A DNA stretch of 64,000 nucleotides from Ostrea edulis (lineage: Eukaryota). A program made the position numbers and the translations under genes. The notes beneath the pieces are model-generated. The model had not been told where the DNA came from. It made no database searches and saw only the letters and a program-made list of their open reading frames with translations. Below, piece after piece: positions 14,768 through 52,000 of the stretch; positions within the stretch are counted from its first letter, which is position 1, and each line of letters opens with the position of its first letter. The DNA is taken from the NCBI RefSeq assembly GCF_947568905.1, contig NC_079164.1, positions 78,182,001 through 78,246,000 of the forward strand. The letters are read 5' to 3'.

Positions 14768-16083
14768 TTAATTTTCTAAATTAGTCACACCTATAGTGTC
14801 TTTATTTTGTTGTTGAAATATTAACCATGAGTTAACAGCTTTCTGAATTTCATCCTCTGGGAGTAGCTTGTAGTGTTGTAACCCAATTAGTAACTCTTGA
14901 CGTGCATTTCCTGCAAAACTATTGGACAAAAAGGCAGGAAGTCCTCTGTATCCATCACCCATTGTAAACAGTGGCGGTCGTACTATACCTAGTGTCTGTT
15001 AAAGAAAGGAAATGCGGTAACCACAATTAATGATGGCATAATTTATTTTTTCTTTAGTGTTGGTACTTTTGGCATATATTTGGTTCCTTTATATTAAACA
15101 GTACGATATATTACTGGTTTTGCAATGGTGTATTGAGACTAATACCTGTTGTAATATATATACCTCTGATCCATAATCTGGAGCTTTTAAATTTTCAAGT
15201 TCAATTTCTTGGAATTGTGGCAGAGTCACCTCTCTCCCATAAAAGTGTAACACAAGAGTCTTGCTCTTGTTCACAAAGGAAATGACATGATCTCTGTCTG
15301 ACAGTTTAAATTTTTGCATGTCAAGACCAATTTCTTCCTCCAGTTCACGGTTTGCTGCTTGGAGGGGGTTTTCTCCGGGATCAACTAAGCCACCGGGAAA
15401 CCCCAGCAAACCATCAAACCTCATCTGCATCTGAAAGAGTTAATATATAAATGTAATTAAAAATTCAGTCTCAACCAGGATTTGAACTTGCAGCCTCTAG
15501 TTCTTTAAAAATTAAGCTTCTACAGTGTCAACCCTGTTGTCAAACTTTGTGTGAATGTAGTTGAACACGATATGAAGTCACTGTATTTAAACTGTAGTCA
15601 GCCTGCATGATGCATAAACTAGTTACTTGATTGTTATTCTTTGGACCATGTTTGCTTTAAATTGAAACACAAAGTATTGCAACTAGTGTCTGTGTATTCT
15701 GAAATACTAGTCCTCCTTCCTTCCCTATTTAGTGTTGCACCTAGTTCATTTGTCAACCTAGTTGAAATGTTCCGTGCAGGTACACAGCAAAGTTTGTCTG
15801 CTTTCAAGGAGATGATAGTGTAACTAAAATGTTGTTCTTTTAGCGACATGATGTGATGAAAAGCAAGAAACAGAATTACCAGCACTGCACCCCTGCAGTT
15901 GTATAGTTCCCAAAGGATAGCGTCATTTCTTGCAAACAGCATCGAGTGTGACGCGTGTCGGAATGAAGCATATTTATCTGATAGGGCTTCCTCGTATGAT
16001 ACGATATCAAAATCCTCTTTCTTATCACCCGCTCGACCATATGCCTCGTAGGCCTGTAATTTTCCCCATCCAATGTCGGTCAT
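14768..16083 (-). CDS. NUDT16: NUDT16-like Nudix hydrolase (U8 snoRNA-decapping enzyme / IDP phosphatase family), 232 aa
   Basis: Exons 16083-15880, 15430-15164, 14995-14768, all phase 0 with GT-AG. Motifs MQMRFDGLLGFPGG, Nudix box GGLVDPGENPLQAANRELEEEIG, DYGSETLGIVRPPLFT, GLPAFLSNSFAGNARQEL. Confidence 0.92.
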
Positions 16084-16239
16084 TTGTGTACGTGAAGTGG
16101 ACACCTGTTGAAATGACAATCTGATTGAATAGTTTGCCTGTTTTAATTGTAGTAGTTCATTTAACTTCCAGACACATAAGAAAATGTCTTTTAAAAGACG
16201 ACAACCATATCAAACTTGAAACTACCGTTACTACGGTAG

Positions 16240-19523: not shown

Positions 19524-20364
19524 TTTTTTTAAAGGGTGGGATAATTTTTGTTCATCCTACAGTTTAAAATAAAATTTGAATTCACAGATTGTAAAAAGAA
19601 AAATTTTCCTTTTTACGCATTGTTAAAAAGACAATCTCTTATCTTAATAATCAGATAAAAAACTTTTATCTGAATCAGCCTTCGTGTACATATAAACTTT
19701 TAGAAAAGGTAGGTTTGGACGAAGAATATTTTATGACAATGTAGGGGTTATATTTGAAGTAAATTTTTATGTCACATGTAAACTTTAAAGCGATGAGGTC
19801 AAATTTCACTTTCAAGATTTATGATCATGTATGATATTCTAGTTCTATTAGATAATTCGCAGACCTCCTTGGGGGTAATACGCGATTGAGACGGTGCTGC
19901 TAGTCAAGATTGGCCTGCATGAGCTGGTTCTTGCCGATGTTGACAGAGCCAGCCTCTACTACTGAGGCAGGTAATGTCTTCCACTCTGATGGTTCTAGGG
20001 ATAAATGAGTGGAGTCTCAGTTGTGTTGTACTTCTGTTGTTTCAGTTTCAGAGAATGGTTTGTCATGGTTCTGACATCAGCCTTTTGTAATCCAAGGTCT
20101 TCAGGTGTGATGGCGACATGACCGTGTAAGATCTTGTACCTCACCAGGAGTCTGGCCCTCTTCCTCCGAAGTTCCAATCCCTCCAGCCCTAGTGATTCAA
20201 ACATTCCTGTCCCTCTAGAATAGGTACTGTAGTCCCTGCATATCCACCTAGCTGCTTGTCGTTGGGTTCGTTCGAGAGTACTAGCATCCTTCTTTGAGTG
20301 AGGATCCCACACAGTTGAGCCGTATTCCATAATGGAAAACTTATAATACGGTACCAATTTTGAT

Positions 20365-20408
20365 GCACCAGATGCGTATTTCGACAAATAATGTCTCTTC
20401 AGTGATGC
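20365..20408 (-). ncRNA. Minimal type I hammerhead ribozyme, copy 1 (stem III palindrome has one substitution)
   Basis: Minus strand GCAUCA CUGAAGA GACA-UUAUU-UGUC GAAA UACGCA UC UGGUGC. Confidence 0.72.
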
Positions 20409-20708
20409 TCAACCGAAATGTTTGAAATCCGAAGTAACAATGAAGTTTTAGAGCTATTATAGGGAAGAACAGTGTGCCAAAAAATGGAGTCAAATTCGTC
20501 TAAGGATAAGAGCCATGCGTGAGGGAGATAATCCTTAATTTTGAAATGAATTTCTAAATTTTAAAACAACAATTAAATATACATTCGTATTTTCAAGCTA
20601 GTAACTAAGTACTACTGGGCTGTAGAGACCCTCGGGGACTACCAGTCCACCAGCAGAGGCCTCGAGCCATGGGTCATAATGTAAAACTGATACGGTACCA
20701 ATTTTGAT

Positions 20709-20752
20709 GCACCAGATGCGCATTTCGACAAATAATGTCTCTTCAGTGATGC
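20709..20752 (-). ncRNA. Minimal type I hammerhead ribozyme, copy 2 (intact)
   Basis: Minus strand GCAUCA CUGAAGA GACA-UUAUU-UGUC GAAA UGCGCA UC UGGUGC: full core CUGANGA/GAAA/UH, 6-bp stem I, 4-bp stem II, palindromic stem III AUGCGCAU. Confidence 0.85.
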
Positions 20753-22219
20753 TCAACAGAAATGTTTGAAATCCGAAATAACAATGAAGTTTTAGAGCTA
20801 TCATAGGGAAAAACAGTGTGCCAAAAAAGTGGATCGCACCATAGAGATATATGCTGTCCTCTTGAACTCTTTCGGGCAGCGCTTGAGGTACAGTACCTAC
20901 GCAGGAAACCCAGCCTCGAATTAGCTCTTATTTAGCACACTGGCTGACCTGTTCTGACCAGTTAAGGCTGCTGGAAATTTTTACACTCAGGTATGTGCAG
21001 GAATCTTCTTGGTCCAAGATGGTATTGTTGAGCTGGTACATGCGTGTGATGGGCTTGGAACGAGCTATGGTCATGATGTTACATTTCCGACAGTTAAATG
21101 CCATTCCCCTCTGCATACTCCATCGTTCCAGCGTATCCAGGTCTTGTAGTTTGGTCTGGTCTTCTGGTGAGTGAATCTCTCTATACAACAAGCACTGGTC
21201 TGCAAATAGTCTGTACTTGGTATTCGGGTCGAGATTAGCAGAAAGAGGAGGGGACTCAGGACAGATCCTTGTGGCACCCCGACGTAACGTCAGCTTCCCG
21301 TGAATACTTGCCCTCCACAAGTAACAGCTGCTTTCCACCTGTGAGAAAAGCTTCTATATAGTTCATGTTGTTTTTGACCCCATATTGTTGTAATTTACAG
21401 ATGGATCGCTGATGAAACACTTTGATAAAAAACTTTGCTGAAGTCCAAAACAGCAACATCTACTTGGGTCTTCTTGTCTCGGATGTTTAACAAGTCATCT
21501 AGCTTAACTTATAACTGAGTCTCATTGGACGGTGATTTTCTGGAAGACATGACCTCCCTTTCTTAAAGAGTGTTACCACGTTGGCATGCAACCATATAGT
21601 AGGGGTGTACCGGTGTCTAGTGATTGTTGGTAGATGATGATCAGCATCGGCGCTAGGATTTCAGCAGGTTCTTTCAGTATTCTGCATGACTTTTGATCTG
21701 GCGCGCCTGCTTTATTTGGATTTATATCAGATAACAGCTTCTGGACTCCTTTGTTTTCTACACGTAGTCTCCTTATAATATAGGAGGATAGCAGGATCCT
21801 TGAAGTGTTGAGTTGGCGTAGCGATCATCTTTGCTGAAATCTGACTATTCAAGATGTTGGCTTTGTCAGTACTTCTGAGTATAGTTCTCCATTTTTATTG
21901 AGAGGTGCCGCTCCGTTCCGTTCGTTACACTGGTTGTAGAGGTACCTATACAGGGGTTTGTTAGTTCCTTCTTCCACTCTAGCTTACAAGATGCCGTTGA
22001 TGTAATTCAGGCTATCAGTGCTGAGAGCTTGGTCGTGACTTTTTAATGGGCATTATATTCTGCAATCAACCATTGTACGAATAGGACGTGTTCTAATTCA
22101 CTCCTTGGGAAGCTGAGATGAGTAAGCTCAAAACAATTTGCAGTGTAAATACGTTTATAGACAGCTTTTCCAGAAATAGGTATAGAAAAATGTACACAAG
22201 TACTGTAGTAGTATGATGA

Positions 22220-23812: not shown

Positions 23813-24604
23813 TTGTATTCGTATCTACTTTGTGGTTCCGACACAGTCACACGCTAAATAATCCCTTACATGGCAGATATGAAGTTTTACGCATCTAGTA
23901 TGTGGATGGTTCATTTAAAGTATGAAAGTAGGGTTTATAACATTCAACTAATAGGGGGAAATCAACAAATAAGAAAGAAAAAATCTGATAAAAAATATAT
24001 GGTAAATATTATATTAATTTGAAATTCAAGGAGTAAATTGTACTGAATTTTTGTGATACTTTTGACATCACATCAATATACTGCAATCGTTTGATATTGT
24101 ACCATTGTCGTTACATGTATATACATGTAGTGTGAAAGGTTAAAAAAAATTAATAAAGTTAACGTTGAGATAACAAAAGTTGATACAGTTGTTTGTATTG
24201 CAGTTAATAAAAATGGCTAACTTTTGGAAAACAATGCCGATTGTTATTAATGTTCATTATCATTTCGCACAAATGTTATGATAATGTTATGTTTTATTCT
24301 GTTCATTATTTTGGTAAATATAAAGCGAAAAAGTATTTGGTTTCGATAAAAACTAAAATTTCACAATTTGACCCATTTGTTTTCATTAGACTCTCTGTAA
24401 TGTATGGGCATGATGAAATGAAATTAAACTTTTTTTTAAGTTCGGTGTAAGCTTCTGTGTCACTAATGGATTTCTGGTGATAAACTGAACACAGGTTTCT
24501 AGCTCTTTAAACAAGGTACCTCTGAGACGATAATCCGACATTGTCCAGGAGGGGGTCATCCGAAGTGGTCATTATCTTTAAATGAAATGACCGGTACACG
24601 GGAC

Positions 24605-27600
24605 ATGCAGGTATTGTTCTGGCTGGTGTGTGCTTTTCCGACAGGTAAGTGTCCAATATTTGCCACGTGCTTCTGTGTGCGATTCTGCCAGAGATTTTTT
24701 TATCTGTCAATATTTAACTCAACCAAATACACAAATGTTAAGGTACAGAGGTCAGGCTTATCTATGTAAGAGATAAAACTCTAGCATTGGTAAATGACTT
24801 TAATTCCTTTACAATTATTATGCTCAATAAGTATACGTTGCTTGATGTATTGTATGGTAACACAATGGATTCGGATCTTTCTATAAAGTACACATCCTGA
24901 AGCGTACCTACTACTACACCATTTGAACCGGAAGTTCCGTTCTTGATAAAAACCGTACCGTTCTCACGTCAAACCGTTCAGCGTTCCGTTCCCGTTCATT
25001 CCTTTCACACCGCTCGTTTCCGCGCAGGATCATTCGGAACTCGCGCATAATTCAGTCATCGTAGGTCAACACCGAGTTTAGTAGAGGTGGAGAGAGACTA
25101 TATAATAATTGCTTTTGACTCAACACAAGACTTTCCGTAGTTCAAAAAAAAGTTTATATATAAAAGTTTATATGTGAGCGGATCTAACATCTAATTTTGA
25201 TTATAGATTGGAAATAGCCTAATGTAAAACTTATACGGTACCAATTTTGATGCACCCGCATTTCGACAAATAATGACTCTTCAGTGATGCGATTTTTAGA
25301 TTTAAAAAAATTATATTGGTAGCATTAGAAATACACTTAAATACTACGATCCCCATGTAGCATTTAAGATGCGTATAACTGTATGAAAGGCGAAGACAAC
25401 GAACGGTGATCAATTTCATAACTCCTATAAGCAATACAAAACAGAGAGTTGGGCAAACACGGACCCCTGGATATATCAGAGGTGGGATCAGGTGCACAAA
25501 AGGAGTAAGCATCCCCTGTATTAATTTACTTTTATCCCCTTCCATTTATTTTAGATATTCATAATTTTAATTATATTAAACTTTTATATAGTTGAGGAAT
25601 TTTTTCTTTCCCACCATGAGTAAAAAGTACCGCAAGTGTCCGAAATTCAGAATTTGAAATAGAGGTTAAACCGTTCATTCCCATCTTAGTTTGGTCCTGA
25701 TTCTCATAAAGAAGGCTAGAAATACTTTTTAACGGCAAATAATTATTATTCAGTCCAGCATAGTTGTTAACATAATTAAGGTACACTGAATCCGGGAAAA
25801 AAATACTGGCCATTTTGAAAATGGCGTTAATTGGGTCAAAATGGCTCAAAGCATTCCGTTCTATATAAATCTAATTAGAATTAAAATTAGACCCCATGAT
25901 CTGCTTATCTACTACAGTTACACCTATGTGTAGCGATAGTAGATGAGCGGATCATCGGGTCTAATTTTAATTACGTTGGTTCTCGATGAAAACCGTTCGT
26001 TCCCTAGCTCAAAGCGTTCTGTTCTCGATGAAAACCGTTCCGTTCAAACTGTTCACCATTCGTTCTCCAAACAAAACCGTTCGTTCACCGTTTCACTGGT
26101 GTAGTAGTACGCTTCAGAATCTGTACCTTGCTTGACATTTGTGACGTAAATAATTACTACATATAGAGAGATAACTTTCAGAATTTTCCTTTCTGTGACC
26201 TTGACCTTTCTCCTATAACATCTTCCTTTAAAAGCAATACCAATCGATGTTTTATACAAATTATCATCTTGTAAGTTTCGTAGAATTTGGATGACATATA
26301 GTTTTTCATGTAATATTGTTCACAAAAATCCCGAATTTCCCTTCCAGTGACTTGACCTTTCACCTGTCACATTACAAACTAACAGCATATACAAAGAGTT
26401 ATTCCGGCAAGTTAATTGATAAAAATCGGGTAAAAGAGTCTCGATTCTTGTACACAATAACGGACGAACGTATACATGTGTGAATAAATGGGCAAGTTAC
26501 ATGTGTGAACAAATGGGCAAGGTACTACAAGTGTTTACTTTACAACCCTCCTTTTCACTGCAGTGTACTTTATCTGTTTTCACTGTTCACCAAATGTTTG
26601 CAGTGAATGTAACTTAAAAATGTAGCCATGATTTATCTAGAATAGTATTAAAACCACGAATTTAATACTACATGAAAACGGAATAAGACAAGAAACCGAA
26701 AATACATCAGGGTATGAACTGTGACGCTTCACGCTGTCATAAAAGTATGCCGGCGTGAAACATTGCTGTTCATACCCGCATGTGTTTTCAAAAATTAAGT
26801 TTATTTATATTTATATTCTTTCATTTCTGTTAGAATTCCCAGCCGATAAATAAATATTTATGTGTATAGATACACACAGTATTTACATTAATTTCCAATG
26901 TTTTTACCTCCGATACCTTTACCAATTAAAATAACAGTGAACAATGTGCGTATGAATCTTTCTAAATATAGTCCGACTAATTCAACGACCATGGATATTC
27001 CGTTTCATGAAAAGCATGCTGGAGGTGAAGCATTGCTGTTCATATCCTCATGTATTTTCAAAATTTTGAAATTTACCTTTTAATTGTTTACATTTATAAT
27101 GCGTTCATGAGGAAATGACTATCATTGAAATTCGTAGAACTATCAAAGGCAAAAAACATTGAAAATGTAAATATCATGGTACGTGTATATTTATTTCACT
27201 TTATCATCTCGTATGCATTGCGTTTTGATTCACTTTAAAATGATATATTTGTACTGATTTATGTGGAGCGAAGTTGAGTCAATTTTCAATTACCATGGTT
27301 CAGATTTCAAGTACAACGTGTTCATAAAATCCATTTCTGGGACACCTGGGTGTCCTTGAAGACAGACAAATAATTTGATAATTGGGCACTCGTCAACAAA
27401 GTGTTGGCAACTGCCTTGGACATTCTGACCAACATTTTTTCGTTGTCAGTCGTTGTCAGTCGTTGTCATCGTTGACCTTAGACAATTATAGTTTGTTAAT
27501 TAGGTAAACCCATGATTTTATTGCACCAACCAAGAACCCTATTATGTTGTTGTTGTTGTTTATTAGTCAAAAGCAAATACATGTACAGCTTATAGACATA

Positions 27601-30600
27601 GTATACAATGTAATAAATCTAAAATCATATAAAGGTCAAGAAAGAATAGAAATTGTGCTTATACATTGGTTATTCTAATTTCAAAGGAATTCTTAATAAA
27701 TTTACCCAGGTTACATAATTCCTTTATATTCTCTGTCGATAAAAATTGAATTAATTGAATTATATTCGAGGTGGATATCGGTTTTTTGGTGCGGTAAAAT
27801 CGTGTATTAATCGATGTCAACATACTTCAGTTCCTTTATCATTTTTGTAGATCTATTTCATTCTACTATTTTTGGAAACGAAGTCTACAATATCAATGTA
27901 GCATGGTATTTTATCAGATAATCACGTGGTATCATTACAACCAATAATTTTTTGGGGAATTACATTAAATATAATTCATATTGTCGATTTCTTCTGAAGA
28001 ACTTCTGAGCTAATTTGAATCAAACTTGACCACCCCTGTAGACGTAGATCAGAAATAAAATGTGAAAAGCACAACTGGACCATGTTAAAAACCTGAAACT
28101 TAGTGACTCAAAATTTTACATTGCTATCTGCCCTGAACACATGGCTACACCTTAAATGTCAAATTGATAAATTCAAGAATCCTCGTGATTGTAGATAAAA
28201 GTTTGTTCAAGCCAATGCTCGAAGTCACGACAGGACACGGAGGTATACATGTACAATAAGAATAAATACCAAACATTTTCTCAAGAATCAAAATTTTGTC
28301 AAATTGATGTGCAAGCATTATCTAATATAGTTCAGACTGCATGACAGTTTTTTTCACTTATGGTCCTTGAGGGTAGAGCTATACCATGGGGATATGAATG
28401 CACAATATACACATATATAGGAGTATGCAGCAAAATCCATTAAACTATCAATATTGTGGCAAATCTTACTTTGACAAATCCCCTTGACCTTTAACAGTTA
28501 GATAATATTGATTTTCACCTCTCCTTTTCTTAATTAAAAAGTGTCTTATAGAATTCAAAAGTTATGACAAAGATTAAAATTGCGGATATAGAATTAAGAA
28601 GCGTCTCAATCAAAATTAGAATTTAATTTTAATTAAATTGGGAGTGTCTAGAAGTGTCTTATAGAATTCAAAAGTTATGACAAAGATTGAAATTACGTAT
28701 ATAGAGGGTAACAAGGAGTAAGACAGGTCATTATGTTCCCGGTTTTCAATCTTCGGGGCGGGAGATTAAAACAAGATAAATATCTAGTTCGAATGTATAT
28801 ACAAACTTTTATGGGCCGATCCATTTTTTACCGGAAATGTCCGACGGTCCGACATATTTCGCGTATTCTGCAGTATGGGGAATATTATGTATCTCAAACT
28901 GCAAACAGCATTCTCCTTGCATGTACGTGCATGTGTCCAAAATGTATGTTTGACAAAATTAATCCGTAGAAGATTTCAGAAAACACTATAATGAACGATT
29001 TTCAAATCAAAAGCATTGTAACAGCGTATAAATAACTTCTCTTTGTTAGTGCTGTGTGGGCTGTGGAGCCATTCAAATTGTCCCCCTGGAAAAGAGACCA
29101 TCGTTCATCTCTTCGAGTGGAAATGGAAGGACGTGGCAACAGAATGTGAAAGAATTCTCGCACCGGCTGGGTTCTGTGGTGTACAGGTGAGATTTGGACC
29201 TGCAAGCAATATACGATTTTTTTGTTTTAGAGAAGGATAATGGCTGACATTTTTCAAAACACAAATGAAAAAATAAATACCAGCAATATATACTGTCATT
29301 TTGAATTTTATAACCTGGCGCTGTGTAGTCGAAACGACTGCTAATAAAAAAAAAAATGAAAAGACAAAAAGGTGTTGAGTGCCAAATTCTAGATCGTGAG
29401 TCCAAGTGCTGTTCTTCCTTAGTCCATATTCATAGTTAGCATCAAATTGCCATCAAGCCAATGTTTAAAAGATCTCCTGACTGTTGGTATAATGACAACC
29501 ACATTAAAGGTGAAGATAACGAACAGTGATCAATCTCATAACTCCTATAAGCAATACAAAATAGATAGTTGGGCAAATACGGACCCTTGAATACACCATA
29601 GGTGGGATCAGGTGCCTAGGAGGAGTAAGCATCACTTGTCGACCGGTCACACCCGCAGTGAGTCCTATATCTTGATCAGGTACACTGAGTTACCCGTTGT
29701 CCAAATCAGTGTGCCAAGAACGGTCTAACAATCGGTATGAAACACATCAGACAGCATTTGAGACAATGATAGGTTGTATTGGCAAACTAGATGGTTATAA
29801 CGACCATAGAATTTGCGAAATGCTGACTTTAAACGAGACTGTTGAAACCCCTGTACCATCAACTTATTTGTCAATAGCCTGCCTCGATTTAAAAACTGAC
29901 CATACGCAGAACAAGCTCTTGTTATATTTATTTTCAACTAACCATTGATGATATGTAAGGTATGAATTTTATACACAATACGTTGCGGATTTGTAGACAT
30001 TTTGCATATGAGTAAAGGATCATAAAATGTTCTAAATGTTAGTTTCCAATCCTACTTTGACCTTATACATTGTTTAAAGATTTCTCCTCCACACGAAAAC
30101 AGAATCGTCCGGCGTCCGCCTCGGCCGTGGTTTGAGCGTTATCAGCCCGTCTCTTACAAGCTGGTAACGAGGAGCGGCACTGAGCAAGAATTCCAAGACA
30201 TGGTGGTGCGCTGCAACAAAGTCGGAATCAGGTAATCACGTAGTTAAATCAAAGACACTGACCGGGTGTATCTTTCAGCATGTAAAGCGATCTAAGGGAG
30301 CGGATCAAATGATCTTAATCTAATTAGATTGGGTAATAGTATCATGATACTTTCGAAATTTGGCTCAAAGTATATAAATTTTGACTTGTGATTACTGATG
30401 CATACATCATTGAAAGTTTTACCGATACATACATTATTTAAAGTTTTACCGATACATACATTTAAAGTTTTACCGATACATACATCATCTAAAGTTTTAC
30501 CGTTACATGCTTTATTTAAAGTTTTACCGTTACATACTTTATTTAAAGTTTTACCGATATATATTTTATTTAAAGTTTTATCGAGACGTACATTATTTGG

Positions 30601-33600
30601 GGGGGGGGGGGGTCTGTTTGTTCATTTATCTATTTGGTATTTTTGGGTTTTTTCTTTTTGCAAAGAGATAAATAACGTGATTTCACTTAGAATAGCGTTA
30701 AAGTATTCAGTGTCAAACACATGGAGAATTAAGTCACTCACTGTACCCACGTAAACATTTATATAAGGGGTCCGGCACGCACTGTCACCGATTTGAACAT
30801 TTATATAAAGGAACCGGTACGCACTATCGCCGATTTTTTCAATTTTGACACATCGACTTAATTTGGCCTAAGTAATTTAAAACCATCATAATTTGGTTGC
30901 TATGCAACTCCGTTGCCATGGTAACACGTACATGCCATTCAGGTCACAAAAGATTAAATTTTACATGAAAAATGACATTTTTATTCAATTGTGCTGGATT
31001 TACACTCTTATGAAATCATTATAAAATGATGATATAAAGCATTTCTATTATGTAATTTGATATTTAGTTAAAGGCTTGAATATTTCTGTATCGTTTTCAT
31101 TCTGTCTGGAAAAGAGGGATGTTTGACACATTCTGAAAAAGCTACTTTAGAGGCAAATTAGAATGATGGATAAAAATTCCCGCATTCAGCTTGAAATCTA
31201 TAAATGCTTGTACAACATACATTAGATATAGTACTATCATATAACAATGAGACATGTTTGGGAATCTTTCTTCTAAGCTGTGTATTCATGGAAACAAAAT
31301 GATGCATTTCGTCATATGACAGTAGAGATGCATTTTGAATGCTTTAATAAATAAATGTTTATTGTCAGAAAATGATGAAGGTGCAATTTACTGGTAAATG
31401 ATTAAAAGCTGATAATTTTGCACAAGAAACTGTCGGAGGAGTTATCCACCCTTGCTAAAAACAAGAAAAATCTAATTTTAAAAAAAACTTGCTGTAAATT
31501 ATTAATTTCATTCATATTTTTATAAAAAAAAAAAAACAAAACAACAACAACAAAAGTTTGAGTAACTTTTTATTAAGGGATTTTAATGAAAGTACAATTT
31601 CTTGTAAGATATTTCTGTAAGATGTTCTTCCTATAAATGTCAATTCAAGGTAAGATACACCAAGAAGCAATGATTGTAAATGTCCATGGTGGATTATTTT
31701 TATTTGATAAACTTTTCAAAAGAATTATATAAATTTCACCATTTATTTATAAGGGATGATCGTTATACATCGAATACCTTAAGGACATTAAGATTTGGCA
31801 GGTCAGCTGAGTTGACAACAGAATTTTATATAAAAGCTTATACAAACGTTATTTATGGCATCTATAATCTTATTGCATTTTTATGAACCCATCCTTCTTA
31901 TTGTTGATTGTTCATTAATCACCTAGTAAGAAAGCGTTTACTTAACCGCTATTAATTTGTGATTAGCCTAAGGGGCAGTGGTAGCTAAGTTTTCTTTGTA
32001 GTGAGTAAAACGAAGACAACTAACATTTTCAGAATCTACGCAGATGTGACCTTGAACCATATGAGCGAAGCAGGTTCCAGTGGACTGGGCACCGGCGGGT
32101 CTTACTACAGCGACCCCTTTTACCCGGAACTCCAAATCTCTGAATCCGATTTCAACAGTGCACAAAACTGTTCAACCAAAGATTTGACTGTCCATAACTA
32201 TACTAACAAAGCAGAGGTTAGAAACTGCAGGCTGCAAGCTCTGAACGATTTGAAGATATTTTCAAATCACATACAAGAAGTACAGCTAGAGTTTTTAAAC
32301 AAGCTGATAGATATCGGAGTGGCGGGTTTTCGAATCGATGCCGCTAAACACATGTGGCCCTCTGAGCTAGAGCGTTTGTACCTCAGGTTCCATCACCTAA
32401 ATACAACATATTTTCCATTTGACACTCGCCCCTTTATTCTTCACGAAGATCTCGTAATAGATACAGTTGGACTGTCCAATGATGTTCCCGAGTACAGCAA
32501 ATTGGCTAAGGTCACCAACTACGAATATGGGTACTTTCTTGCACGGGTATTTCTGTAAGTACCATTCATATTGGAGCTTTTTATTTGCACTATTTCATAT
32601 TTGATAGGAAACATTTAAATATGATGTCTGGAGATTTTGATTGAACTTTGTATAGGTTTAAATTATGGATGGTCCCATATGTCCAGTGCTTTATAGGAAT
32701 ATTTTGTTTCTCAGAATAAATCAAACTAAGTAAATGGAGTGGACCTGACTTTATAAGTAGTAGTTGTGCTGTGAAACTAAGCCTTACAAAACAATGCCTT
32801 ATTTATGAATTGTAGAGGCCACACAGCCAATCTGAGAATTCTGACTGACTTAGAGTTGAGACCAGGTTGGTCAGCCTCTGAGGACACAATGGTTTTCATC
32901 GATGACAGTGCAAGTCAACGTGGCTATGGAACAGGTAACAGTAAATCAGATTGAAAACAATTTCACGCGGTTTTACTACATTCTTTGTACGTTGAATCTA
33001 CTCCGGTTTCTTTGGGTTTTTTTCCCTTATCCATATCAAAGTTAGCGAAACTTTCTATGGAGTTACATTTATACGCCAGTAATTAGAATTAGCAAAACTT
33101 TCTAGGGAGTCATTTTTTATACGTCGGTCTTTAGAATTAGCAAAACTTTCTAAGGGGTTATTTTTTAAAACGCCCGTCTTTAAAATTAGCATAACTTTCT
33201 AGGGAGTTATTGTTTATACGCCCGTCTTTAGGTAGGACGTACGTGCATATATGGATTTGTCGATTGTTCGTCCGTCCGTCTGTAAGGAATCAGTTGTACG
33301 GCCTTTTCCCCAATGTTTGACGTTTAGCTTTGATACACATGTGGTATACCACCTCGATATAGAATAAGTTAAGGATAATTATCATGTACAATAATATTTT
33401 GAAATCAAAAGGCTTAACATTCATTCTATATAGCCAAAAATGCAGCTTAAATAAAAGGTAATGTGGGGGAAATAAAACAACTCTTGTGAAATTCGAACTC
33501 ACGACTTGCAGACTAGGAGCCACACTTTAACACACTGAGCTAACCCGTTTGTCAATGAAGTTTAAAAGGTCAAGAAATATGATACTATATTTTTATTTTT

Positions 33601-35229
33601 CCATTTATAGTTCGTAAGGAAGTCGGTCATGATTGTGGCCCTATGAAAATTCTTCTTGTTTTAATTTTAGACTTTTTTCTTTGTTGTGTTATTGCTTTGC
33701 GTGTTGCTTCACAATGCTACTCATTGTTCATTTAAGTTGTTCAGAGTTTTCCTTTGATCTAAAAGTTTCGAAAGTAAAATACAAACCACGAAATAGGCAT
33801 CAAATTTATCGATGTATATGTAAAGAATTACAGCCGCATTTTGTATCGTTGAGGATACTCTTAGTTTAGTTGGGTTTTTTTTATTTGCTATTTGCGGTCC
33901 AAACATCAAATGTGTCCATTGTGTATTTTTCAGCGAACGTGTTGTCTAACTTTAATAATCCCCGTCTGTATAAAATGTCAACGGCTTTCATGCTCGCACA
34001 TCCATATGGATTGGTAAGAGTTATGAGTAGCTACTATTGGCCGAGGACGATGATCAACGGTACAGATGTCAATTCCTGGATGGGCCCGCCAGCATCTAAC
34101 AACATGTCTACTCTGGAAGTCTTCGACGAGAACAGTCTAGATTGTAAAAATGGATGGGCAAGTAGATATGCCAACACGCTAACTTTTGAAGATTTAAATC
34201 TGTATATCCAGTAGTATGAACATATCTACCACTGCAAACTATCTTCTCTTGAGATCTAATTGTACTTGGGAATGTGTCATTAGGAGTAAACTATCCATGT
34301 ACAAGTTGCAAAGTAGAGGTAGTATGACCATTCTTTTCTTGAGATTTAATTGTAGTTGGGAATGTGTAAACTATAAAGCAGAACTACTTTTGCTCTGATG
34401 TTAGATGTGTCGATAATCGAGTTATTTTGCTCTGATGTTAGATGTCTCGATAATCGAGTTCTTTGGCTCTGATGTTAGATGTCTCGATAATCGAGTTCTT
34501 TTTCTTTGATGTTAGATTTCTCGATAATCGAGGTTTTTTCTCTGATGTAAGATGTCTCGATAATCGAGTTATTTTGCTCTGATGTTAGATGTCTCGATAA
34601 TCGAGTTCTTTGGCTCTTATGTTAGATGTCTCGATAATCGAGTTCTTTTTTACGCTGGATAATCACCAAAAGCTGTTTTCATTTGTGCAGATTTGTGAAC
34701 ATCGATGGCGACCAATAAAGAACATGGTGGGTTTCCGGAACGCTGTTGGTAAGACCAGATTAACGTATTGGTGGAGCAACGATCAGAGACAATTTGCCTT
34801 TGCTCGACAAGGTAGAGGCTTCCTTGTCGTGAACGCAGGAAATTCTGAACTTTCCATCGGACTACTAACTACTCTACCAAGTGGCACATACTGTGACGTC
34901 ATATCTGGGGACTTTGTGAATGGTTTATGTACTGGACAGACAATAAAAGTAAACAATGCTGGACATGCAAGTTTCAGAATACATTCTCGTCAAGCGGAAC
35001 CGATGATTGCAATACATATTGGTAAGGGATAAAGACCACACTAAGCGTGATTTATGTATTACTGCACGTGTACTGGTATTTCTAGCGATACATTCAATTG
35101 TAAATTACATTTTTAACGTTTTCTAAAATCTTTTATTTTACAGGTGCTAAGTTGGGAACCTCTAATGAACAGACTTCTATTCAAAGTATTCCGAATGTTG
35201 GATCATTTCCAGGAGTCGTGGGAAAATGA
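24605..35229 (+). CDS. Alpha-amylase-like protein (GH13, animal type), ~536 aa, secreted; catalytic Asp of region IV replaced
   Basis: Exons 24605-24644 (alternative ATG 24587), 29050-29186, 30080-30231, 32033-32554, 32816-32934, 33934-34157, 34691-35021, 35144-35229 join in frame with no stops. Motifs [75 protein letters not shown]. Confidence 0.93.
24885..26129. mobile_element. Unclassified TIR element in amylase intron 1 with CCGTTC-rich ends
   Basis: Imperfect TIR aaagtacacatcctgaagcgtac..ctactacacca / aaggtacagattctgaagcgtactactacacca; contains a Penelope fragment and a hairpin. No clear TSD. Confidence 0.6.
25231..25520 (-). mobile_element. Penelope-like 3' fragment followed by a broken hammerhead (25252-25290)
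   Basis: Family 3' end (25385-25520) plus a copy of the 20709 hammerhead lacking 5 nt that include the cleavage site. Confidence 0.7.
29505..29935 (-). mobile_element. Penelope-like retroelement 3' fragment
   Basis: ORF remnant [41 protein letters not shown] plus the shared 3' end seen in about eight copies in this window. Confidence 0.8.
30405..30590. repeat. Minisatellite, ~27-bp unit (ttaaagttttaccgatacatacattat), ~7 copies
   Basis: Direct tandem copies in amylase intron 3. Confidence 0.85.
33040..33295. repeat. Four ~54-bp tandem units running into a HINE-like head
   Basis: ttagcaaaactttctagggag..ttatacgcccgtcttt repeated, then cgtccgtccgtctgt. Confidence 0.6.
34392..34650. repeat. Minisatellite, 37-bp unit GCTCTGATGTTAGATGTCTCGATAATCGAGTTATTTT, ~7 copies
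   Basis: Direct tandem copies in amylase intron 6; each holds the palindrome CTCGAT-A-ATCGAG. Confidence 0.9.
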
Positions 35230-42196: not shown

Positions 42197-42413
42197 NNNN
42201 NNNNNNNNNNNNNNNNNNNNNNNNNNNNNNNNNNNNNNNNNNNNNNNNNNNNNNNNNNNNNNNNNNNNNNNNNNNNNNNNNNNNNNNNNNNNNNNNNNNN
42301 NNNNNNNNNNNNNNNNNNNNNNNNNNNNNNNNNNNNNNNNNNNNNNNNNNNNNNNNNNNNNNNNNNNNNNNNNNNNNNNNNNNNNNNNNNNNNNNNNNNN
42401 NNNNNNNNNNNNN
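42197..42413. other. Assembly gap, 217 N
   Basis: N run. Confidence 1.
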
Positions 42414-48621: not shown

Positions 48622-49064
48622 TAATAAAACGGTTTTAACATATTTATTGGTATCATTTAGCTAGCTGTAGAACTGTAGCAGAGTGTCCTGTCACAATATT
48701 TTTCAGAGTGCTACAGTTCTGCAGCTAGGTTTTAACATAAATATTGGTATCAATCGTTTTTATATGCAACACTGCATTAGAGATTTGACAGTGAAACACA
48801 TAATATATGTATATCTATAATTATTTAAAGCCTTTCTTAAAGTGACATACTACCAAGCTCGTCTGCAATGCAGCATGTGGCGAACTGACAAAGTTCATGG
48901 TCTCAAGGAGCTTATATCGTGTGCTTTATTAAACATTGGGTTATTAAACAGCTGGGTTAAAGACAGGGCATGACACGGAATATTATCCACACGTTTAAAC
49001 TTTCCCTTTGCCACTAGCTGATCACGTGCTTGAACACATAGTTGTGTTAAGCCTTTTCTCTACT

Positions 49065-52000
49065 ATGGATACAGTTGCAATAATTCTTACAACTATTTTC
49101 GGATTTCTAGTTTTCTTGTGTGTATTTTGGCGGAAAAAGAGAAACCTACCCCCTGGACCAACTCCAGTACCACTCCTAGGAAACCTGATTCTGTTCCGTA
49201 AAGATCCACGTGCATATAAATTGTACACAAAGCTCGCGGAAGAATATGGAAATATTTACAGCCTTCACTGCGGGTCGACCCTTATAGTTATTCTTAATGG
49301 ATATGACGCAATAAACGAAGCTTTCGTAAAACAGGCAGACGTTTTCACAGACAGGCCCCAGTTGTTTGTTCCGCTCATTGGTGTCTCAAAGGGAACAGGT
49401 AGTACCATAGTACCATTGTCTCTTTAATCAAAATATTCTAGTACCTTTATGAAAATTAGTTGCCATAAACTATCGTTCAACCTTACATACTTTATAACAA
49501 TGATATTAGTTACTAGCATGTATCGGTCAAGTCTTTTAGATATGACCTTAGATAGAAGGTCCCAGTTCACGACAGATGGTATGATAAAGACCCCTCTCTG
49601 TTATGGCTGTAAGCGCCGTATTCTCAAATTTTCTTGGTGATGTCCTCGAATGGGGCGTAATATAAAACAACACACAAATAGCTAGTAGCATGTCCTATCT
49701 ATCGTTTATGCGTTTTCACTTGTGTATACATAAGATTTAACGAATATTCATTATCAGGATGCTGCTTTACATAAAGATTAGTCTTTAAGGTTATATTTTT
49801 GAGAGAAAAAAGTCATGTTGTATATAAGGAGTATTTTGGATGCCTTTTGCAGATGAATTACACTATGTTTTCTGCCACCGCAGAACATTAGGTAACGGGA
49901 CGCTTTTATTCAATAGAAACATTACACTCTTTCAGGTTTAACATACAATAGTGATCGACCATGGAAAATCCTGAGACGGTTCGCTCTGCAAGCTCTAAGA
50001 GATTTTGGAGTGGGGAAAAAGTCACTAGAAGATAGGATACAAGAGGAAGTGCATGTTGTCATGGAAACGTTGAAAATCAGCGACGGACAGCCAATCCGAG
50101 TTAAACCGCTGTTTTTGTCAGCTGCAACAAACATCATATGCAGTGTCATGTTTGGTGCAAGGTTTGTCATAATTTGCACAAGGACTGAACCCCTGGTAAA
50201 GTAATAACAGAGGACTTTAATTTCATAACATATTTCCCCCCATATTTTGCAGGTTTCAGTACACAGATGACCGATTCAATGAGCTGACGGATGTTCTAGA
50301 CTCCATATTTCGACTTAACGCACCGTTTGCGAAGGAAAATTTCTTTCCGTTCACCAGAAACCTCCCTGGCGGGAAAGAGGCAAGTGTCTGACAATTGCTA
50401 TAAGATCGTCAAACAAGAAACATCAAATCAATAAATGCATTTAATAATCTACATTTATATTTCAGCTAATAAGAAAAAGAAGTGCTGCAATAGAGAAAGT
50501 GAAACAGTACCTAGCTGTAACCATAAAAGAACACGAGGAAACCTTTGACCCCGATATCATACGAGATTTCATTGATTTGTACATTAAGGCGTCTCGAGAC
50601 GAATCAGACCCCGAGATATACACTGGTCTGGTATTCTCTGGAATAACATTAAGATGGAAATTATTGTGAAAGCATCTGAACCAGTGATCATTATGAACAC
50701 GTCATCATATTATTTGCAGAAGCCAATGTTTATAAAGTCATCGTTGACCTTTTCCTCGCGGGAGGGGAGACAACTGGAACAAGTTTAGACTGGTCCCTAT
50801 TGTATATGATCACATTCCCAGACACACAAAGGAAGTGCCAGGAAGAAATTGATCACGTATGTTAGGCAACACGGCTCATGTAATATGATAAAAAAAAAAT
50901 TCTGAAATCCATTAATATACTACCATATCTACCAATATACACAAATCTTGTGATTCTTGACACAGGTTGTCGGTAAAAGCAGGTCCGTTGGTTTAGAAGA
51001 TAGGGGTAAAATGCCATACCTGGAAGCCACTTTGCTGGAAATTCAAAGAATAGCGAATACTTGCAAGTATCAACTTTCGATATTCTTCAAGTGGTGAATT
51101 TGATTAATTGTAATCTGCAGTATATATGTTTGAAATACATGTGAAATATACATTATAATTAACAATCTGGGGATTGTGTATTTTATAATTCCATTCCAGA
51201 AATAATATGATGGAAAAACTCTTGATTTCCTGTTTCAGTAACCTTCTCCCTTCCACACATTGCAAAACAAGATACCCAGTTGCTTGGATTTGATATTCCA
51301 AAAGATGCTATCATCATTGCCAATCTATACTCCGCCCACATCGACCAAAAGTATTGGGAAGAGCCTCACATGTTCAAACCTGAACGGTTTTTAAACGACG
51401 CTGGATCCCTTAAACGAAGGGACGCTTTTGTCCCCTTTTCCACAGGTATCTAGCCGTTACACATAAATTCTTTTTGAATTTTCCCATTTGCGAATGGTAC
51501 ATGTATTTGCGTCACCTGCAGAGGTTAACAACTAACCTCGGGTTTAGAATAGGAAATACATGCTCGACAAGATTTACTAGGCTTGGGTATCATTATTCTG
51601 TGTATAACATTCATCAAATTTCGTGAACATGATTTTATATAATTTAGTAGAATCCACTGACTTCCCGTTGAACTTGACTTTTATTTATTTGTATAAATGG
51701 TGGTCATCTTTAATTCATAGATAATCCCGCATTGCTTAACGTGAAACTATTGCTTAACATCTAAAGGCATTTGATATATTATCTGGAGACCAAGAGGTCT
51801 CGGACAGACGGAAGGGACACGACCCCCACCCCCTCCCGCCTTTTGCTTGAGCGGATGACACTACACGTGTACTCATATGCATAGAAACAAAAAGAGAAAG
51901 ATATTATTTTCCTTGTACCAAACTAATTTGCATTTTACATATTGATTTGTAATATGAATACTTGATAGTTACATGAACATATGTTACATTTAAATAACTT

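Follow-up and report, generated by a model that had tools for sequence, protein, structure and literature searches.

A conserved oyster alpha-amylase paralog without the catalytic Asp300 and His299: a candidate glucan-binding pseudoenzyme in Ostrea edulis

What becomes of a secreted amylase when part of its catalytic center has been replaced? A gene of the flat oyster Ostrea edulis raises this question. It lies in a 64,000-nucleotide stretch of contig NC_079164.1 (forward strand, 78,182,001 to 78,246,000), which we call the window and within which all coordinates below are counted. A tblastn search finds a single amylase gene in the window, with 8 coding exons at 24605-35229 on the plus strand, a coding sequence of 1611 nt, and a product of 536 amino acids that begins with a signal peptide. 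An earlier note on this DNA had proposed that the catalytic Asn-His-Asp (NHD) motif of an intact amylase gene is here replaced by Asp-Ser-Ala (DSA), and it had pointed to reads, orthologs, substitution rates, and structure prediction as ways of learning what this means. We find, as that note had supposed, an intact paralog that is under selection and whose catalytic center is disabled or altered, and orthologs, substitution rates, independent contigs, and gene structure agree on this. On balance, we lean towards a catalytically crippled, secreted alpha-glucan-binding pseudoenzyme whose role would have shifted to binding, escorting, or modulating. The loss of activity, the glucan binding, and the physiological role are what we infer from the evidence laid out below.

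The catalytic residues themselves provide the first part of the answer. Direct translation of 32886-32934, in exon 5, gives 16 residues of conserved region IV, in which GAC (32904-32906), AGT (32907-32909), and GCA (32910-32912) encode D298, S299, and A300 where mammalian pancreatic amylase has N298, H299, and D300. These codons, and the absence of any indel, had been read correctly in the earlier note: in a phmmer search against all PDB chains, Drosophila amylase (VFVDNHDNQRGHG) aligns to the window's 13-residue region IV motif without an indel. Residues were numbered through a MAFFT alignment with a primate pancreatic-type amylase as reference, whose R195, D197, E233, N298, H299, D300, and R337 fall at their expected positions. 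This alignment places Asp, Ser, and Ala at 298-300, giving the proposed N298D, H299S, and D300A, and it likewise bears out the claim that the nucleophile, the calcium-site residues, and the chloride-binding arginines are kept. Retained in the window protein are W58, Y62, Q63, D96, N100, H101, Y151, R158, and D167, together with R195, the nucleophile D197 (codon 32337-32339), K200, H201, E233, R303, R337, and R398. Altered in every species of the clade described below are N298D, H299S, D300A, W59F, E240L, H305Y, and the mobile loop, which is 1 or 2 residues shorter than canonical; T163Q, F256Y, and N301S are further substitutions. A clade-specific insertion of two residues, Asp-Leu (32448-32453), directly follows the acid/base Glu233 (codon 32445-32447). 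Neither the insertion, nor the shorter loop, nor W59F, T163Q, E240L, F256Y, N301S, and H305Y had been mentioned in the earlier note.

The catalytic triad Asp197/Glu233/Asp300 is incomplete in the window protein and in all of its orthologs, with D197 and E233 present and Ala at 300. Region IV, canonically FVDNHD and including His299, reads FIDDSA in the clade; among the homologs that we fetched, NHD occurs in 75 region IV motif matches, and DSA in none outside the clade. The chloride site R195/N298/R337 keeps both arginines and has Asp in place of Asn298, while all four Ca2+ ligands (N100, R158, D167, and H201) are retained in all five species. By fold, phylogeny, calcium site, and regions I-III, the protein is a member of the animal-type GH13_15/24 lineage; with its catalytic triad, region IV, and chloride triad all incomplete, it ought not to be classed as an alpha-amylase enzyme. 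H299S and D300A amount to the replacement of key catalytic residues that marks a pseudoenzyme, and normal starch hydrolysis with Ala300 and Ser299 is very unlikely.

Before any meaning is read into three codons, one has to ask whether they are an error of assembly or sequencing. Contigs (Logan) of three public DNA runs from the same organism span 31558-33016, and 32904-32912 is identical in all of them. One of the three runs carries several different intronic alleles, and because its intronic variants differ, it represents an independent haplotype. Independent DNA contigs of three runs therefore hold DSA and not NHD, the outcome on which the earlier note had made its case depend. The same three residues are also found in five other species, where they are specified by different synonymous codons. 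An artefact at the NHD codons is, in light of these two observations, almost inconceivable.

Those five species are all oysters. The orthologs of Magallana gigas (XP_034337342), Crassostrea virginica (XP_022342131), C. angulata (XP_052715816), Saccostrea echinata (XP_061162621), and S. cucullata (XP_062592180) share the 13-residue DSA motif exactly (5/5), settling in its favor the question of conservation that had been posed for other oysters. All five also contain the window's unusual 16-residue segment with HEDLVID, which includes the Asp-Leu insertion, and in databases all five are named only 'alpha-amylase(-like)'. The closest ortholog of the flat oyster protein is that of Saccostrea, at 80-82% identity. 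A word search with exon 4 recovered exon-sized open reading frames (ORFs) at 79% identity, HEDLVID being present in all; one contig (L001) carries exon 5 too, with a 14-residue region IV sequence that differs from the window by six silent codon differences. Full-length proteins fall outside the length range of this single-exon search, and fragments were linked to annotated full-length proteins through cluster look-ups, with the Magallana and Crassostrea full-length proteins surfacing solely through cluster membership. When 1.84 billion cluster representatives were searched exhaustively with HMMER, none fell between the clade (79%) and ordinary amylases (at most 48%); within the reach of that library, only oysters have the clade. 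The matches listed for a search with the Haliotis protein P0123 alone are all canonical amylases. Alignments of P0123 with the window exons were partly misaligned; one of these (A3) nevertheless recovered the Saccostrea ortholog.

Two apparent relatives were rejected. P0115 is a chimeric gene model, and P0148, a Logan protein of 90 amino acids at 60% identity, is a C-to-T-converted copy of the M. gigas exon-4 ORF. P0148 has S to F, P to L, T to I, A to V, and R to C changes throughout, and is a bisulfite-library contig that poses as a '60% homologue' in protein databases.

Given a genuine replacement shared among oysters, is the gene around it whole? Exon 1 (24605-24644) supplies the start codon and the larger part of the signal peptide (13 amino acids plus 1 nt) and ends at the donor CAG/GTAAGT. 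It was found by a scan for short phase-1 ATG...GT exons and is validated by the first exon of the M. gigas ortholog, which matches it at 40 nt and in the same phase; the 'MQV' start is also that of the M. gigas RefSeq protein, which begins MQVPVLLLCGFVQ. A second in-frame ATG lies upstream, at 24587. Exon 2 (29050-29186), at 137 nt as in both Saccostrea orthologs, carries the end of the signal peptide and the mature N-terminus, and exon 3 (30080-30231), 152 nt in all five species, carries W59F between the retained W58 and Y62. Exon 4 (32033-32554) encodes conserved regions I-III with D197, E233, and the Asp-Leu insertion; exon 5 (32816-32934) encodes region IV with D298/S299/A300, followed by Y305 and the shortened mobile loop; and exon 6 (33934-34157) encodes LVRVMSSY with the retained R337. 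Domain C (Alpha-amylase_C, Pfam PF02806, E 3.5e-13) is on exon 7 (34691-35021). Exon 8 (35144-35229), placed by tblastn with ortholog tails, adds a 28-residue C-terminal tail and the stop codon TGA (35227-35229). In the Pfam search, PF00128 remained below threshold on single exons.

The exon lengths of the window gene, 40/137/152/522/119/224/331/86 nt, compare with 40/140/152/522/119/224/331/83 in M. gigas RefSeq, and they likewise match the C. virginica and Saccostrea RefSeq models. When four RefSeq proteins are mapped exactly onto their loci with splicing, the five central exons measure 152/522/119/224/331 in every species. The eight stop-free exons and the signal peptide that had been proposed are in agreement with both the splice-site reading and these ortholog exon lengths. 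The intron after exon 6 is of the GC-AG type, with the donor GCAAGT at 34158; it is conserved and no defect. M. gigas and S. cucullata share the GC donor with the window, whereas S. echinata and C. virginica use GT, so that GC and GT have switched within one orthologous intron.

Several alternative boundaries were discarded. A GT donor for exon 6 at 34162 is out of phase, and the GC donor at 34158 is the conserved one. A TTG-initiated start ('MLVLCGLWS') and a TATA-driven start at 29030 were both rejected, as exon 2 has no in-frame ATG and the orthologs have an upstream 40-nt exon. An ORF end at 35030-35032 (IGKG and stop) gives way to a donor after 35021 (GTAAGG) that leads to exon 8, as in all orthologs. 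The RefSeq model of the S. echinata ortholog has a 7-nt first exon ('MA' plus 1 base, L006:6001-6007) and no signal peptide; its 5' end is probably mis-modeled, as the other species have a signal-peptide exon of 40-67 nt. At the other end of the protein, the tail of about 28 residues (exon 8 and the ortholog C-termini) has a conserved end, F/V-P-G-[IV]-[ILV]-G-[KR](R/K)(R), and the M. gigas and C. virginica tails have a KR/RR site before the final 14-18 residues. This arrangement looks like a putative convertase and amidation-type processing signal. Canonical mollusk amylases end in GAKKGSPKKVTT.

An open reading frame could still belong to an unexpressed or decaying copy that only looks intact, and here rates of substitution are informative. 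Codons were compared among the window and the four orthologs with fetched DNA (five species). Over the full-length coding sequences, the proportion of differing sites is 0.06-0.18 for nonsynonymous sites (pN) and 0.40-0.80 for synonymous sites (pS), and the pairwise ratio of nonsynonymous to synonymous substitution rates (dN/dS, or omega) is 0.066-0.106 where dS can be estimated. For the unsaturated pair, S. echinata and S. cucullata, dS is 0.56, dN 0.060, and omega 0.106; exon-level dN/dS is consistent with the full-length values. None of these ratios is near 1, the result that would have counted against the selection that the earlier note had suspected. Within the 13-residue region IV motif, 10 of the 13 codons vary silently with no amino-acid change. 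The residues of the 16-residue HEDLVID segment of exon 4 are invariant over silent variation at 13/16 codons, as are those of a 15-residue segment (11/15 codons). Purifying selection across species, a further mark of a pseudoenzyme, is seen in the low dN/dS and in motif codons that vary only silently.

Phylogeny tells a similar story. In a maximum-likelihood tree of 42 animal amylases (LG+C20+F+G4, posterior mean site frequency), the five DSA proteins are monophyletic (100/100) and nest among amylases of pteriomorph and unionid bivalves (98/97). At 1.43 substitutions/site, the stem of the clade is much longer than its crown branches (0.05-0.21), which are like the branches of canonical amylases. 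In canonical animal amylases, 138 alignment columns show a single residue in 35 or more of 36 sequences, and the clade conserves that residue in 119 of them. Changed columns number 19; they include 238, 240, 252, 256, 281, 284, 298, 299, 300, 301, 305, 309, and 314, with clusters at 238-240, 281-284, and 298-314. The listed positions lie in the beta5-alpha5 loop, in region IV, and in the mobile loop, the part that closes on the substrate. To us this looks like a directed remodeling concentrated in the catalytic cleft, on a preserved scaffold, and not like decay.

A pseudogene would fit the absence of RNA evidence in the exon search and of transcript-derived full-length proteins among the cluster members, both of which are detailed below. 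It would have to be squared, however, with eight open exons whose lengths and phases are conserved in five species, with a dN/dS of about 0.08 although synonymous sites are saturated, with the retention of 119/138 universally conserved columns, and with a locus that is syntenic with Saccostrea. The selection data therefore contradict this explanation, and we consider it highly improbable.

The predicted fold is that of a normal animal amylase, the outcome of the structure prediction that had been recommended, here for an ortholog. An AlphaFold2 model of the S. echinata protein (82% identical to the window protein), built on a 46-sequence alignment, has a mean predicted local distance difference test score (pLDDT) of 87.8 and a predicted template modeling (TM) score of 0.89. 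Foldseek matches it to human and pig amylases with a TM score of 0.94-0.95 and a root-mean-square deviation of 1.8-2.0 Å. The (beta/alpha)8 barrel, domain B, and C-terminal beta-sandwich are accounted for by this match and by PF02806 on exon 7. The sole weak internal segment of the model is residues 242-245 (pLDDT <50), in the loop carrying or following the insertion, and the C-terminal tail is predicted to be disordered (pLDDT about 32-35).

What, then, might such a protein do? In GH13 enzymes, Asp300 and His299 hold O2 and O3 of the glucose in the -1 subsite and stabilize the transition state. In mutant work on human pancreatic amylase, the loss of D300 alone reportedly lowers kcat by about 10^3; PDB entries 1kbb/1kbk and 1xgz, which are among the Foldseek matches, we take to be such mutant studies. 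We propose that a bivalve digestive amylase was duplicated and gave rise to an oyster-specific paralog clade of animal-type GH13_15/24, that a burst of change would then have remodeled the -1/+1/+2 subsites, and that the gene may have stayed nearly constant since. Secretion, the amylase fold, the disulfides, the calcium site, the stacking residues W58/Y62, D197, E233, and most of the cleft would have been retained through this process. With Asp300 replaced by Ala and His299 by Ser, the grip on O2/O3 of the -1 glucose would be lost; the chloride ligand Asn298 is replaced by Asp. The most likely consequence would be a fall in starch hydrolysis by orders of magnitude, leaving a non-catalytic or very slow alpha-glucan-binding protein that may act as a binder or escort. 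Alternatively, it could be a modulator or partner of canonical amylase, as plant ISA2 is for ISA1. A pseudoenzyme that binds glucan is the best-supported reading because the protein appears to be secreted and keeps the calcium site, the disulfide cysteines, W58/Y62, and most of the cleft, and we hold it to be somewhat more probable than its alternatives taken together.

Several observations weigh against such a binder. When sequencing runs were searched with exon 4, no true RNA run was found to contain the exon, and the runs that we compared to the locus are DNA contigs, with introns covered and no splice joints. A transcript-derived full-length protein is found for 0/21 C. virginica cluster members and for none among the listed M. 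gigas members, all of which are genome annotations or exon-sized DNA ORFs; in contrast, a Holothuria amylase-like protein (Asp300 to Tyr) has three full-length transcript-sized contigs. The selection signal implies that the gene is presumably used somewhere, and expression is perhaps low-level or restricted to a rarely sampled tissue or stage. A second set of objections comes from the active center, where D197, E233, R195, H101, H201, and Y62 show strict retention. A second oyster paralog has lost the nucleophile as well, so that a protein which only binds would have no need of these residues, and the fact that they are kept points towards some remaining or changed catalysis. The active center is also adjoined by two new carboxylates, Asp298 and the Asp after E233, that could compensate. 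Finally, the GH13_45 enzyme BmaN1 is active with Asp replaced by His at the same position (PMC5347038).

These last points lead to the possibility that enzymatic activity persists, though with another chemistry or specificity. A retaining mechanism would then still be run by D197 and E233, and without Asp300/His299 there would be space around O2/O3 of the -1 sugar to accommodate a different or substituted glucan, or transglycosylation would be favored. The chloride pocket might have a fixed anion of its own in Asp298, and some of the work of Asp300 might pass to the Asp that the insertion places after E233. Consistent with such an enzyme, the nucleophile, the acid/base, R195, R337, H101, H201, and Y62 have been strictly conserved over a long time, the Asp-Leu insertion is invariant and adjoins E233, and the changes cluster in substrate-contacting loops instead of being scattered. 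A fully dead copy looks different, as the D197-less oyster paralog illustrates, and BmaN1 sets a precedent for an active GH13 enzyme with an aberrant triad. However, Ala makes no hydrogen bond to the sugar, unlike the His of BmaN1, and the insertion loop coincides with the low-confidence segment of the model (242-245), which leaves compensation without geometric support. The combined loss of H299 and D300 is, moreover, expected to be multiplicatively damaging. We regard an altered enzyme as possible, though not as the probable outcome. Its most specific form we consider unlikely: the protein would be a functional glycoside hydrolase or transglycosylase, the third carboxylate would have moved to Asp298 or to the inserted Asp, and Asp298 would replace chloride activation. 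If true, the relocated carboxylate would be a natural rewiring of an active site in animal GH13, and the enzyme might act on a new substrate, for instance an algal glucan that is substituted or branched.

Comparison with known proteins helps to place the clade, for which the crippled binder remains our preferred reading. The canonical bivalve digestive amylases of GH13_15/24 (M. gigas K1QDY3, Pinctada fucata) surround it in the tree and are about 50% identical to it. They have in common with it the three-domain fold, calcium ligands, disulfide cysteines, regions I-III, R195/R337, and a signal peptide. The clade differs in DSA for NHD, in the Asp-Leu after E233, in the fixed W59F/E240L/H305Y, in a shorter mobile loop, in a longer C-terminal tail (about 28 amino acids with the end FPG-x-x-G-K/R, versus GAKKGSPKKVTT), and in its very long stem. 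The BmaN1 group (GH13_45, PMC5347038) is likewise a natural conserved group in which the transition-state-stabilizing Asp is replaced and the nucleophile and acid/base are kept, and the activity of BmaN1 therefore calls for caution in equating substitution of this Asp with inactivity. BmaN1 is bacterial, belongs to another subfamily, has demonstrated activity, and carries His as the substitute, whereas the oyster clade has Ala and has also lost the neighboring His.

Non-catalytic relatives exist within GH13 as well: the SLC3 heavy chains rBAT and 4F2hc are non-catalytic GH13 paralogs, whose scaffold has likewise been kept under selection after catalytic residues were lost and now serves binding or partnering. 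Plant ISOAMYLASE 2 resembles the oyster clade in that a GH13 scaffold has been kept under selection after catalytic loss, with a binding or partnering function (PMC12510319). Both ISA2 and the SLC3 chains belong to other subfamilies and cellular settings, and unlike them the oyster clade keeps 2/3 carboxylates and is not known to have a partner.

Asp300 has also been lost elsewhere. The second oyster paralog (S. echinata XP_061183288, S. cucullata XP_062588492; P0137/P0428) has DDQ[LV] in region IV; it differs from the DSA clade in that it has lost the nucleophile too (GFRISSAKY), has neither the Asp-Leu insertion nor DSA, and forms a separate lineage. Proteins of the sea cucumber Holothuria leucospilota (P0149, region IV SHY) and the shrimp Halocaridina rubra (P0161, SHL) lack Asp300 in further separate lineages, again without DSA. 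The Haliotis protein P0123 has TQD in region IV (H299Q). The second oyster paralog, the sea cucumber, and the shrimp together suggest that amylase-derived pseudoenzymes may recur in marine invertebrates and may be under-described. Full-text literature searches, within incomplete coverage, turned up no account of an oyster or bivalve amylase with deficient catalysis, nor of the ortholog accessions. What is new here is a conserved clade whose center has been rewired or disabled, inside a family that is otherwise well known.

The remainder of the window provides the genomic setting. Upstream of the amylase gene, at 15161-16097 on the minus strand, are exons of a Nudt16-like NUDIX gene, 77-90% identical to ORFs that precede the ortholog in S. 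echinata; this neighbor is upstream of the ortholog in both Saccostrea genomes and serves as the synteny anchor. Intron 2 contains, at 29400-29999, an extremely high-copy repeat, with a summed contig depth of 10^6-10^7 in DNA runs versus about 30-130 in the flanks. Many back-going and skipping contig joints occur around 29505-29550, and the repeat may be a short interspersed or satellite-like element of very high abundance. The segment 30600-31400 is moderately repeated. Intronic minisatellites are found at 30392-30598 (27 bp x 7.8 copies), 33042-33231 (48 bp x 4.0 copies), and 34387-34650 (37 bp x 7.1 copies). Reverse-transcriptase-like retroelement ORF fragments and, further along, a cytochrome P450-like first exon (PPGPTPVPLLGNL…) lie at 19995-21338 (minus strand) and 49008-49427 (plus strand), and a run of 217 N at 42197-42413 is an assembly gap or masked stretch.

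For the family, the clade matters since animal amylases are textbook enzymes whose Asp300 is taken to be invariant, while oysters keep a secreted copy without Asp300 and His299 under strong constraint, a constraint that persists to synonymous saturation between genera. It is a natural experiment on the purpose of the third GH13 carboxylate and of the chloride ligand. Under the label 'alpha-amylase(-like)', counts of oyster amylase genes and studies of their expression or association with growth may silently include a non-amylase. For an aquaculture species in which glycogen and starch metabolism are economically relevant, the clade offers a candidate glucan-binding or regulatory protein.

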